A stretch of 63,773 bases of DNA, the filler included, from Octopus bimaculoides (Eukaryota): assembly GCF_001194135.2 (NCBI RefSeq). It is 5 parts of 4 records of this genome, joined end to end, with 100 filler letters (N's around TTAATTAATTAA, not from the genome) between each part and the next. Parts side by side here need not be neighbours in the genome. Positions count along the whole stretch, not along the records: positions 1 to 20,498 come from NC_069010.1; 4 more parts are not named here. The stretch is one strand, 5' to 3'. Below are positions 1,531 through 19,038 of this stretch, piece after piece. How positions within the stretch are numbered: the stretch's first letter is position 1; each line of letters opens with the position of its first letter. The translations under genes were made by a program, and so were the position numbers. The notes beneath the pieces were generated by a model. It had not been told where the DNA came from, searched no databases, and worked only from the letters and a program-made list of their open reading frames with translations.

Positions 1531-1787
1531 GGATGAAATACCGCTAAGCATTTCGCCTGGAGTGCAAAAAATATTATTTTCTACTCTAGGCACAAGGTCC
1601 GAAATTTGGGGGGAGGAAACCAGTCGATTAGATCGAATTAAGTACGCAACTGGTACTTAATTTATCGACCCCGAAATGATGAAGGTAAAGTCGACCTCGG
1701 CGGAATTTGAACGCAGTACGTAAAGACAGACAAAATACTGATGTTTTCGCCGGGTGTGCTAATGCTTCTGCCAGCACGCCGCCTTAC
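1531..1787 (-). mobile_element. tRNA-derived SINE family A: full copy (1572-1787) plus partial head (1531-1565) fused to the Tx1 fragment
   Basis: Matches the repeat ggcggcgagctggcagaatcgttagc…gttcaaattccgccgaggtcgac…aagtaccagttg…ccttgtgcctagagtag, which recurs more than 15 times in the window. Confidence 0.85.
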
Positions 1788-1809
1788 TTTTAGAAAAATA
1801 TCCTTTTTT

Positions 1810-2066
1810 ATAAGAGATGAGGAATTATGTACATTATTTACATTTAAAGATTATTTGTCCTCATCTTGTTTGTTGTTAACACAACGTTTCGGCTGATATA
1901 CTCTTCAACCTTCATCATGGGGAAATTTCGGACTTCGGTTCTCATTCTAAAGGTATTTTTCGATGATATTATTATTATTATTATTATTATTCAGGTCACT
2001 ACCTGGAATCGAACTCGGAATCTTGTGATTAGTACCCCGCGCTGTTAACCACTACGCCATATGCCC
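1810..2066 (-). mobile_element. Penelope 3' terminal module: tRNA-like head (1994-2066), (AAT)n, degenerate hammerhead-like motif (1878-1918)
   Basis: The minus strand has an A box tggcgtagtgg and a B box gttcgattcc, then (aat)n, then atgatga-a-ggttg…cagcc-gaaacgtt-gtgtt. It lies directly downstream of a GIY-YIG ORF. Confidence 0.6.
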
Positions 2067-2089
2067 GTGGGCAATTATGGAGTAAATTG

Positions 2090-2480
2090 TAGGCCTTATA
2101 AATCTAATATTTTCCTATCCTTCCTTATTACCGGTTCCCATATGCTACTCATATCTGCACTCGGTCTGCTTAGGAGGTTGTTGTGCTCTAGCATATGTGC
2201 TGCTTCTTTTAGTTCTCGTATTTTCCAGTGGTGTTCTCTGTCTATTAGTTTAACTTCATCCCACGGGGGAGGTGGTCCCCATTTTCCATACATGATCAGT
2301 TATACCCGATTTATAAATATCACCCCGTGTCACAGCTTTGCGATGGTCCTCTTCCCTTATTTTGAGGGGGCGACATGTTTCGCCTTTGTATAACCTACCA
2401 CAGCTGCATGGGATGGAGTACACGCAGTCTTTGGTCATATTCTCTTCTACTTATATTCTTTGCTCGCTACTTATATTCTT
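2090..2480 (-). pseudogene. Penelope-like element GIY-YIG endonuclease C-terminal fragment
   Basis: VYSIPCSCGRLYKGETCRPLKIREEDHRKAV…KSGITDHVWK…WDEVKLIDREHHWKIRELKEAAHM (frameshifted) fits the PLE GIY-YIG pattern. Confidence 0.85.
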
Positions 2481-2486
2481 TGCTCG

Positions 2487-16100: not shown

Positions 16101-17061
16101 NNNNNNNNNNNNNNNNNNNNNNNNNNNNNNNNNNNNNNNNNNNNNNNNNNNNCAAATACGACTCATATGATTTTACAAAACAAATACCGTAAGTCAGTAT
16201 CATCTATGAGACTGGACTTCATAAGTCTATATTTAATGGATTACCAGCCCCAGTCCCGCGAGATAAGGAAAAGGTCGTGACTTTCGCTCCACCTAATAAT
16301 TCTGTGTCGGTAATAAGACGGGATTTTAACAAATCTATTTCCTGCCACTTCCGACCCTGTATCCACAGTTTTTTCTAGTCAGCTGCAGTGATCACAAGAT
16401 GGTTACCTGTAAACTGACAATAGATACGTTACATAGCCAGGGATCTGGCTACTGGAAACTCAAAACGTCCCTTTTGGCGATTGAGGAGTACAGAAAGCGG
16501 ATCGAGATATTAATACAGAGGTCATTAACAGGTACCATCATTAAGAACAAATGGTGGTACACGCTAAAAAGAGCCATCAAATATGAGTCTTTTAGGTTTA
16601 ACATAAATTTAGCTAAAAAGGAACGTAGAATAGGAGATGGTTTAGTTAAGGAATTAGAAGCCTGGAGGACTGGTAATGCGGACCAAGCAAGGTGGAAAAC
16701 ACTGGAGTTAAACGAGTATCTTGAAGCCCAACACATGGGAAGTATTGCCAGAGCTAAGTTACGTGCGATGGGAAGGGAAGGAATCAAGGCCGCTGGATGG
16801 GCCAGAGTGGTGGAAGCTCGACAAGGAAATAATTCCACTCTACGGTCTTTGACGAATCATAATGGCATATTGATAAACGAACACGAGAAATGGTGTGAGG
16901 CCTTTCGGAAGTACTTCGCCCAGCTATTAGTGGGTGACGGTGGTTCTGGTAATGGGAGAGCCTCGAGGACATTCTTGTCGGTCTGCCGTGTCTTTCAGGG
17001 TCGGATGCGGAGGCAAGTCGATGCCTTCAGACAGCGCTGTTGGGCGCTGGACGAAGGGACC
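13135..17061 (+). mobile_element. Internally deleted Tx1-like element (copy X-C): 5'UTR, ORF1, APE remnant/linker, RT mostly deleted; 5' 1.5 kb present twice
   Basis: ORF1 (…IWSDVVYLTRSRKFGTVEIRF…) and ORF2 remnant (SDHKMV…GSGYWKLKTSLL…). Near 16985 it jumps to GKSMPSDSAVGRWTKG, which is also the start of the fragment at 20498. Confidence 0.8.
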
Positions 17062-17636
17062 NNNNNNNNNNNNNNNNNNNNNNNNNNNNNNNNNNNNNNN
17101 NNNNNNNNNNNNNNNNNNNNNNNNNNNNNNNNNNNNNNNNNNNNNNNNNNNNNNNNNNNNNATATACATGTGCACACACGCAGACGCACACATGCACGCA
17201 TACATACATACACACACACTGAGACACGCATGCGCAAAAAAAAGAAAGAAAAGCAAAAACAGAACGCAATGTAAATAACGGACAGAGTCAAAACTATTGA
17301 AAAGGTTGCAAGACGCAACGAAAATTTTAGGAAAATAAAAATAAGTGGAAATTTTAACGGTGAGTGTGTTAAATTTTAAGGCACGAAAAGAAAATTACTC
17401 TCCNNNNNNNNNNNNNNNNNNNNNNNNNNNNNNNNNNNNNNNNNNNNNNNNNNNNNNNNNNNNNNNNNNNNNNNNNNNNNNNNNNNNNNNNNNNNNNNNN
17501 NNNNNNNNNNNNNNNNNNNNNNNNNNNNNNNNNNNNNNNNNNNNNNNNNNNNNNNNNNNNNNNNNNNNNNNNNNNNNNNNNNNNNNNNNNNNNNNNNNNN
17601 NNNNNNNNNNNNNNNNNNNNNNNNNNNNNNNNNNNN

Positions 17637-18466
17637 TCAATAGACTATGTATTATTCATTTAAAATACAGAGATGCCTATAATAGGACATCTGACCCGCT
17701 AGAAAGAGCAGCAAAAGACTACATACCACAAAAATAGGGATAATTTCGAAAGGGAATGAAAAATAAAAACATTTACCAATCTATATTCTGTACTATGGTT
17801 TCAAGTCAATTTAGTAAGATAAAAATATATCTTACAATGGTCGGACTATCATCGGCAGAATGACCAGACAACATATGAAACACGAGTCATAGGGAGCATG
17901 GCCCGTGTTCATATGTTTAATTTTCCAAATTTACCGCGTATTTGCGGTTTACCTAATCGGCAGCAAATACAAAAGATGCCGATTTTCTTTCAGAAATTAG
18001 CCAAAAAATTTTATTATTAATAAATTATAGGGTAGCAAAAATTTTAGAAATTTTATTTACCACCAGTGGTCTAGCGAGAGTAAAATCAGTCAATAGACTA
18101 TGTATTATTCATTTAAAATACAGAGATGCCTATAATAGGACATCTGACCCGCTAGAAAGAGCAGCAAAAGACTACATACCACAAAAATAGGGATAATTTC
18201 GAAAGGGAATGAAAAATAAAAACATTTACCAATCTATATTCTGTACCATGGTTTCAAGTCAATTTAGTAAGATAAAAATATATCTTACAATGGTCGGACT
18301 GCCGATGATAGTCTGACCATTGTAAGATATATTTTTATCTTACTAAATTGACTTGAAACCATGGTACAGAATATAGATTCCCTATTTTTGTGGTATGTAG
18401 TCTTTTGCTGCTCTTTCTAGCGGGTCAGATGTCCTATTATAGGCATCTCTATATTTTAAATGAATA
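17637..18466. repeat. 453-bp direct duplication plus fold-back inversion
   Basis: 17637+ is repeated at 18090+; 18310-18466 is the reverse complement of 18106-18300 with an internal deletion. Confidence 0.85.
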
Positions 18467-18889
18467 TATATATATATATATATATATATATACATAAGCA
18501 TAATTAAGGGCGCTGAAGTGCCAACGCCTACATGCTAGGAGACGTCAACTCTACTTACAATTCCAAATGTGTCCTCTTATAACGCAAGGCTGAATGTGAG
18601 AAAATGGACAATAAGATCTAAAAAATTTAGGACGACTCTATATCTTAAGATTTCATGTTTTGTCATTAATAATACCTTACGCTGATCAGTATGAGTATAC
18701 CGACAATATATAACTGAGAAATACATATACAAACGGATACGTTTCTGCGTATACCAATATATACATGCGCTTCCCGCGAATACATCATATCTAACCACAT
18801 TCAACCTTGTGTTATAAGAGAACAAATTTCGAGTGATCTGTAGGCTTGACATCTGCTTCTAGCGTGTATAATTGTATACTTATATATTC

Positions 18890-19038
18890 TTTTCTACGCT
18901 AGGCACAAGGGCCGTCATTTTGGAGGAGGAGGCCAGTTGATTAGATCGATACCAGTACGCAACTGATACGTAATTTCTCCACCTCGAAAGGGTGAAAAAC
19001 AAAGTCGACCTCGGCGGAATTTGAACAGACGAAATACC
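18890..19038 (-). mobile_element. SINE A downstream half beginning exactly at ggtatttcgtctg
   Basis: Minus strand reads ggtatttcgtctgttcaaattccgccgaggtcgactttg… immediately after the Tx1 tail. Confidence 0.85.

Follow-up and report, generated by a model that had tools for sequence, protein, structure and literature searches.

The window considered here is a 63,773-nucleotide stretch of DNA from Octopus bimaculoides (assembly GCF_001194135.2), and the part analysed is its first piece, at positions 1-20498, which contains nine runs of N. In this piece, elements resembling long interspersed elements (LINEs), which share a common 3' end (…GGGYAATAAAGAAAT), repeatedly meet copies of one short interspersed element (SINE) at a single position in its head. 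The SINE is a mobile element of ~225 bp with box A-like (TGGCAGAAACG) and box B-like (GAGTTCAAATTCC) motifs that were spotted by eye. A first-pass annotation of this DNA had called the SINE derived from transfer RNA (tRNA), which is not supported beyond these motifs: ARAGORN found no tRNA in the window, and Rfam matched no tRNA, either in the window (E<=1) or in a consensus-like SINE head (E<=10).

All SINE junctions were compared in one alignment (A2), in which the SINE begins in the same column at every 3' junction. Element A (11715-13124, +) ends in a tail (…GGGTAATAAAGAAACA) that is followed at 13125 by GGTATTTCGT, a 10-nt remnant of the SINE target (13125-13134, +) lying between this tail and the 5' end of element B. 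On the opposite strand, the tail of element E (…GGGTAATAAAGAAATT) is followed at 19038 (-) by a SINE body (18884-19038, -) that begins with GGTATTTCGTCTG and has a 15-nt internal deletion. Together with three junctions in an Octopus sinensis locus described below (L002 12786, 14239, and 15284), these make five 3' junctions at the same nucleotide, with tails …GGGYAATAAAGAAA. A sixth, diverged 3' junction lies at ~10989, where, after a tail of a different type (F), a SINE body (10989-11163, +, start approximate) begins TGTATAGCGTTTGTC, diverged GGTATTTCGTCTGTC, in the common column with a diverged TGTATAGCG. The combined pattern of tail and site, AAAGAAANNGGTATTTCGT, has two occurrences in the window and three in L002, and was found in none of 100 shuffles of each.

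At the 5' junctions the SINE head ends at different distances past the presumed nick site, i.e., the point at which the SINE resumes on the 3' side. At 7712 and 11714, SINE heads (7661-7712, +, and its duplicate 11663-11714, +) end with …GCTTCGCGGTAT, 5 nt past the nick site (+5, GGTAT), and are followed by AACGGCTC of elements A' and A, respectively; in A, GGTAT is present at both ends. Before element B the SINE ends with GGTATTTCGT (+10), and the +10 distance is also that of the O. sinensis B copy. At 1531 (-) a 5'-truncated SINE head (1531-1565, -) ending …GCTTAGCGGTATTTCATCC directly abuts the 5' end of element D, having run through GGTATTTCATCC to 11-12 nt past the nick site (+11/12). Each junction listed by the first-pass annotation (13125, 19038 (-), 7712, 11714, and 1531 (-)) is therefore present where it was placed, and its description of a fixed 3' and a variable 5' junction was borne out. 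Every insert is parallel to its SINE, and the window contains at least four separate SINE loci. Between A and B, 10 nt of target (13125-13134) remain, these elements having been inserted one after the other into the same site.

The elements in the window are all truncated or without a reverse transcriptase (RT) core, and the core with its YADD motif is absent from B and D and from the whole window. Element A comprises a 5' untranslated region (UTR), a first open reading frame (ORF1) with a CCHC zinc knuckle and a 243-codon open stretch, and a 3'UTR, while in A' (7713-9595, +) a 5'UTR is followed by a degenerate ORF1 that also encodes a CCHC knuckle, a 3'UTR, and a tail ending …GGGTAATAAAGAAAT. 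Neither has ORF2, and at 1.4-1.9 kb they look like a non-autonomous class that keeps the gene for the RNA-binding protein only. Element B (13135-17061, +) is redundantly assembled (13135-14649 and 14681-17061) and consists of a 5'UTR, ORF1, a linker, and an RT end (GKSMPSDS…), with its endonuclease deleted at 16363; it is cut by a gap at 17062. Element D (1-1530, -), which belongs to the B family and is truncated at its 5' end, is ~90% identical to B in the window and 84-87% to the O. sinensis copy; it retains the C-terminal part of ORF1, a 10-N gap, the end of an apurinic/apyrimidinic (AP) endonuclease (…SDHKMVTCKL), and the linker, and runs off the piece at position 1. Element E (19039-20498, -) contains the 3' part of ORF2, including an RT end (KLLGVWFG) and a C-terminal CPRCG motif together with frameshifts and stops, followed by a 3'UTR and the tail …GCCCCTTGTGGGTAATAAAGAAATT, and it breaks off at the edge of the piece. 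In the B family, the deletion junction joining the linker to the RT end is identical in the window and in O. sinensis; therefore, the RT-deleted derivative is old and was amplified in trans. A conserved hairpin in the common tail is not supported, with four weak pairs predicted and no compensatory change.

Between A' and the SINE body at ~10989 lies a rearranged nest (9596-10988, +) consisting of C (a LINE 5'UTR with the N-terminal part of ORF1), a second, opposed 5' portion, and F, a 3'UTR whose hairpin tail is of another type. Two LINE 5' ends that face each other form a perfect inverted repeat of 21 nt (9596-9616 and 10673-10693), and the 3' parts of both are gone. The nest is either rearranged or mis-assembled. 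The body at 10989-11163 and the head at 7661-7712 are probably two halves of one SINE, and the proposal of a single SINE split by about 3.3 kb is plausible; the interior, A' included, is a rearranged nest rather than a clean pair of inserts. The start of another SINE head (11170-11194) adjoins the gap at 11195-11632.

The same arrangement was found in a second species. L002 is a gap-free 20.6-kb stretch of O. sinensis chromosome CM016868.1 that was selected through ORF1 similarity alone and not through its junctions. At L002 9771-12785, a complete 3-kb B-type element separates a SINE head (…GCTCAGC GTTATTTCCT) from a SINE body (GGTATTTCGTCCG…) and is flanked by a target duplication of ~10 bp (GTTATTTCCT and GGTATTTCGT), and head and body together rebuild one SINE. 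This insert and A in the window (GGTAT) are the two for which both sides and a target duplication can be seen. Altogether, five LINE insertions occupy the site: the B copy of L002 and, in the window, A, B, D, and E. Another SINE contains the A'/C/F nest.

At the other two L002 junctions (14239 and 15284), the tail is again followed by GGTATTTCGT and the SINE body, and the inserted piece is a SINE variant, SINE-B, rather than a LINE. SINE-B is present at L002 13998-14238, 15120-15283, and ~8170-8423 (-), and ends …TTGTCCCCTCTATGTTTAGCCACTTGTGGGTATTAAAGAAATA. Its last 45-55 nt correspond to the LINE 3' end, as aligned to E and A of the window, and its head and core are those of the window SINE; judged by this composition, SINE-B is a classical partner SINE of the LINEs. 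Dimer-like SINE-B::SINE units occupy L002 13998-14405 and 15120-15460. In one of the two, a separate upstream head is missing, as could result from homology-mediated 5' joining or from a composite family.

Taken together, we consider it probable (roughly 0.8) that these LINE families and their dependents use target-primed reverse transcription to insert into an abundant SINE, with a preference for one position in its head. In this reading, octopus genomes hold related LINE families of the L1/Tx1 superfamily, whose dependents, namely ORF1-only elements, RT-deleted elements, and the partner SINE variant, have the 3' tail (…GGGYAATAAAGAAAT) in common with them. In the mechanism we propose, an AP-type endonuclease would nick the bottom strand opposite 5'-GCTTAGC^GGTATTTCG-3' and thus fix the 3' junction, while the top strand would be cut 5-12 nt downstream, yielding target duplications that start with GGTAT and variable 5' junctions. 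The duplication would restore the site, allowing later elements to reinsert and build nested or tandem arrays. The insert is located between the box A-like and the box B-like motif of the SINE. By analogy with Tx1L, the endonuclease itself would read the SINE sequence, and the targeting may serve as a "safe harbour". A LINE has been regarded as target-specific when >20% of its copies lie in the target (PMC4494074). In our sample of ~41 kb, the same 3' junction in independent copies, target-derived duplications, a single orientation, and a share of >20% in the target were all found.

Several observations weigh against this reading or limit it. A 25-nt LINE/SINE-B tail (TTAGCCCCTTGTGGGCAATAAAGAA) is inserted at 3414-3438 (+) outside any SINE, with a perfect target duplication of 19 nt around it (3395-3413 and 3439-3457), and the SINE-B copy at L002 ~8170-8423 (-) likewise sits outside any SINE. 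The sample is small, ~41 kb from two genomes, and the window was picked for its pattern; its assembly has many gaps and is redundant in part. Both full-length B copies share the +10 junction, which could also have arisen by descent, and a dimeric composite that was copied could underlie the two SINE-B/SINE junctions of L002. Since two tail-bearing inserts, neither of them a LINE, lie off target, the specificity is a strong preference and not an absolute rule. The one-site insertion claimed by the first-pass annotation accordingly holds as a preferred site, one seen also in O. sinensis with both junctions and a duplication, and not as an exclusive one.

Three unoccupied sites were found: in a full-length SINE of the window (1566-1790, -; mutated, …CATCAGTATTTTGTCTG), and in the SINE-B copies at L002 8170-8423 (-) and 13998-14238. 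The G after the nick is altered in all three (CAGT, GCCG, GCAG), and the nick position falls inside a CpG. These data, from three sites only, hint that CpG decay may retire old SINE targets.

The explanation that comes closest to competing with preferential insertion is descent, in which a few ancient LINE-in-SINE insertions were multiplied as composites or by segmental duplication and the junctions were simply inherited; we judge it unlikely. It applies to one pair. The segments 7636-7968 and 11635-11972 are 95% identical over 338 bp that comprise flank, SINE head, 5'UTR, and the start of ORF1, including 25 nt of non-SINE flank, and because flank, head, and junction are shared at this level, the junctions at 7712 and 11714 are a single duplicated junction rather than independent ones. 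Past this block, A' and A diverge into different subfamilies, and further on only 75 nt match at 80%, a pattern that could be due to recombination, gene conversion, or a chimeric contig. Descent could also account for the +10 junction common to the window and O. sinensis B copies, and for the L002 SINE-B/SINE junctions, which are 92% alike on the tail side and of which one lacks an upstream head, as a dimeric composite would. Against descent, inserts of different families (A, B/D, E, and F) with differing 5' junctions (+5, +10, and +11/12) are found at the site. Further, D meets the SINE head despite its 5' truncation within ORF1, and is therefore an independent insertion. The SINE halves are ~75-87% alike across both species, no closer than random copies, and in L002 head and body restore one SINE with a simple 10-bp duplication. 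Finally, the flanks outside the SINEs are unrelated between junctions, and the junctions are therefore not derived from one duplicated locus. Derivation of all junctions from one duplicated locus, which the first-pass annotation had named as one outcome that would speak against its claim, was thus not observed, given these flanks and the second species, apart from the pair at 7712/11714.

Still less probable is an inverted order of events, in which SINE copies 5'-truncated at an RT stop at GGTAT inserted beside A-rich LINE tails, or in which the LINE RT switched template onto SINE RNA and so produced head-LINE chimeras with no DNA target involved. U6-L1 chimeras provide a precedent for template switching, and the head-LINE junctions taken alone fit it. 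Likewise, the junctions at 19038 in the window and at 14239 and 15284 in L002 consist of tail and body only, with no matching head nearby. However, neither process explains in combination the heads that end 5-12 nt past exactly the start of the body and the GGTAT… duplications that flank A in the window and the L002 element, and template switching predicts no pattern at the 3' junctions. Chance nesting in SINE-rich DNA or an artefact of short-read assembly would draw on the abundance of SINEs, ~12% of an octopus genome (PMC13282606), and on the nine gaps, redundant contigs, and rearranged nest of the window, but is hardly credible given five or six 3' junctions identical to the nucleotide, no match in 100 shuffles per locus, a probability of ~1e-10 by our own estimate for exact hits at three of five LINE 3' ends with ~1 site per 4 kb locally, and the recurrence of the pattern in the gap-free CM016868.1 stretch.

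The affiliation of the LINEs can be judged in part from the O. sinensis copy. The conceptual endonuclease of its B element (L002 11467-12130) matches Pfam PF03372 (Exo_endo_phos) at 2.4e-14, and its closest solved structures are those of the human L1 endonuclease; in the window only the end of this domain is present, the remainder being deleted in B and gapped in D. Element E is 58-60% identical to two proteins (P0001 and P0002), both of which carry RVT_1 and zf-RVT (PF13966), and among solved structures P0002 was closest to human L1 ORF2p, at 1e-21 versus R2 at 1e-12. The stitched translation of E, which is degenerate, has no Pfam match, though KLLGVWFG and CPRCG are visible. In ORF1, the CCHC knuckle matches PF00098 with 21.6 bits against a cut-off of 20.8. 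The Type I ORF1 of the Tx1 clade has both an RNA recognition motif (RRM) and a CCHC zinc knuckle (PMC5203782); a conserved block of the octopus ORF1 (…GRKFGTVEVRF…LLPxYxGRR…) gave no Pfam RRM match, and a structural model (predicted local distance difference test score, 68) gave no significant fold match. Because of the L1-like AP endonuclease, the RT relatives with zf-RVT, and the CCHC-bearing ORF1, we would place this group in the L1/Tx1 superfamily. The narrower Tx1 affiliation given in the first-pass annotation is a candidate one, supported indirectly by the listing of L1-Tx1 among the recently active LINE clades in the annotation of O. vulgaris (PMC13282606).

A profile search with the window ORF1 matched an O. 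bimaculoides UniRef entry, an O. sinensis RefSeq protein, and Logan contigs, among which L002 of O. sinensis alone was informative. A protein search with the C-terminus of ORF2 returned relatives at 36-63% identity, none of them labelled as octopus; one locus (L001) shares no DNA with the window. No gene record was found for the O. bimaculoides UniRef protein or for a window ORF. In the Logan contigs (L003-L013), the elements adjoin other sequences, and one contig carries a homologous SINE that is unoccupied and in the opposite orientation. Because they match the window and L002 weakly, these contigs are taken to come from a more distant octopod. The tail and the SINE core had no matches in metagenome, viral, and prokaryote-genome DNA collections, which hold no octopus DNA.

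Insertion of LINEs into SINEs is in itself familiar from primates, in which Alu-in-Alu and L1-in-Alu-tail nesting occur and the SINE, carrying the preferred motif of the LINE endonuclease, is a frequent landing site. That motif is a loose TTTT/AA in A-rich tails, whereas the octopus site is one defined internal position with nucleotide-identical junctions. Closer parallels exist in the Tx1 clade, whose known targets include small nuclear RNA (snRNA) and 5S genes, microsatellites, DNA transposons (Tx1D, Mariner-N4_AMi, and Harbinger), and long terminal repeat elements, and in which partner SINEs have the same target and tandem inserts enclose a duplication between them (PMC4494074). One is the crocodilian system of Tx1-Mar and SINEU, which insert into Mariner-N4_AMi (Kojima 2015, PMC4494074). 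There, too, a LINE and the short elements that it mobilizes share a site in an abundant transposon, tandem inserts are arranged around a target duplication, the preference is graded (13-90% of SINEU copies), and 5'-truncated copies were used as an argument against hitch-hiking (PMC4494074). However, the octopus target is the head of a SINE and not a DNA transposon, and unlike SINEU, the octopus partner SINE has the target in its own head and can insert into its own kind.

In Xenopus laevis, Tx1L, as summarized in the source cited here, is likewise a LINE with an AP-type endonuclease that inserts at a fixed point in a repeated element, the piggyBac-type Tx1D, and its endonuclease was itself shown to cut the target (Christensen et al. 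2000 via PMC4494074). The octopus case differs in target class and host phylum. Keno (U2 snRNA genes), Mutsu (5S ribosomal RNA genes), and Kibi and Koshi (microsatellites) show the same sequence-specific targeting of multicopy sites (Kojima & Fujiwara 2004 via PMC4494074). In that summary, these families insert into host RNA genes or simple repeats, whereas the octopus target is a ~225-bp mobile element that matches no tRNA model. In the literature searched, which left Repbase reports outside, we found no description of a LINE targeting a SINE in octopus or of the SINE sequence. What is new is thus a SINE as the target and a partner SINE with the target in its own head, the behavior being otherwise that of known Tx1-type elements; the novelty asserted in the earlier annotation extends to the first of these points and not to the targeting of other transposons, which was already known for the Tx1 clade (PMC4494074).

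These features raise the further, tentative possibility, on balance doubtful, that the LINEs and SINE-B form a self-renewing landing-pad system. SINE-B carries the LINE target in its own head, and each new copy might therefore supply a fresh, harmless site that could be used by the LINE, by the ORF1-only and RT-deleted elements that parasitize it, and by additional SINE copies, the last of these giving rise to dimers; insertion would split box A from box B, and CpG decay at GC^GG would retire old sites. No description of such an identity of target and partner for Tx1-type elements was found in the literature searched. If it is true that the partner SINE renews the target, this would be a case of transposons shaping their own insertion niche.

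Irrespective of this possibility, preferential insertion at the SINE site adds a SINE to the list of targets of L1/Tx1-type elements and extends such targeting to cephalopods, whose genomes consist of repeats to about two-thirds. It also yields a concrete candidate recognition sequence for the endonuclease, and it accounts in part for the nested LINE/SINE clusters and SINE dimers that fragment octopus assemblies. For repeat annotation, split SINE copies are to be expected at the site.

The style of the window's scaffold suggests a short-read assembly. The 10-N gap within D (729-738) replaces ~530 bp of endonuclease sequence present in the O. sinensis copy. The gap at 2753-2977 has identical 59-bp edges (2694-2752 and 2978-3036), indicating an unmerged overlap. 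Within B, sequence from the respective other copy spans the gaps at 13298-13801 and 15635-16152 (401 and 299 bp), and the gap at 14650-14680 connects the interior of B with a 5' end of B. Blocks of 13130-14649 are found again in 14681-16315, 99.5-100% identical across the gaps, so that the join at 14650-14680 represents redundant scaffolding or, alternatively, a tandem of very recent origin. No bridging sequence was found for the gaps at 11195-11632 and 17062-17161. The segments 17637-17847 and 18090-18300 are identical or nearly so around a gap, which points to an unmerged contig overlap or redundant scaffolding.

Other repeats in the window belong to different classes. A degenerate remnant of a mariner/Mos1-type transposase lies at 6130-7170 (HTH_48, 4.7e-13; Transposase_1, 1.2e-27), and a weaker one, with parts on both strands, at 4072-5100. 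A degenerate, weakly matching Pif1-helicase-like sequence (7262-7640; Pif1_2B_dom at 3.3e-4, below the cut-off), which lies directly upstream of the SINE head at 7661-7712 and in whose remnant this head is situated, may derive from a Helitron. At 1985-2065 (-), a second, different tRNA-like repeat is present in reverse orientation (…GGCGTAGTGGTTAAC…GAGTTCGATTCC…), for which ARAGORN makes no call. Positions 18099-18474 form a large imperfect palindrome, ~78% self-complementary over 376-415 nt, with weak microRNA-like Rfam matches far under threshold, and a long (CA)n microsatellite occupies 3850-3962.

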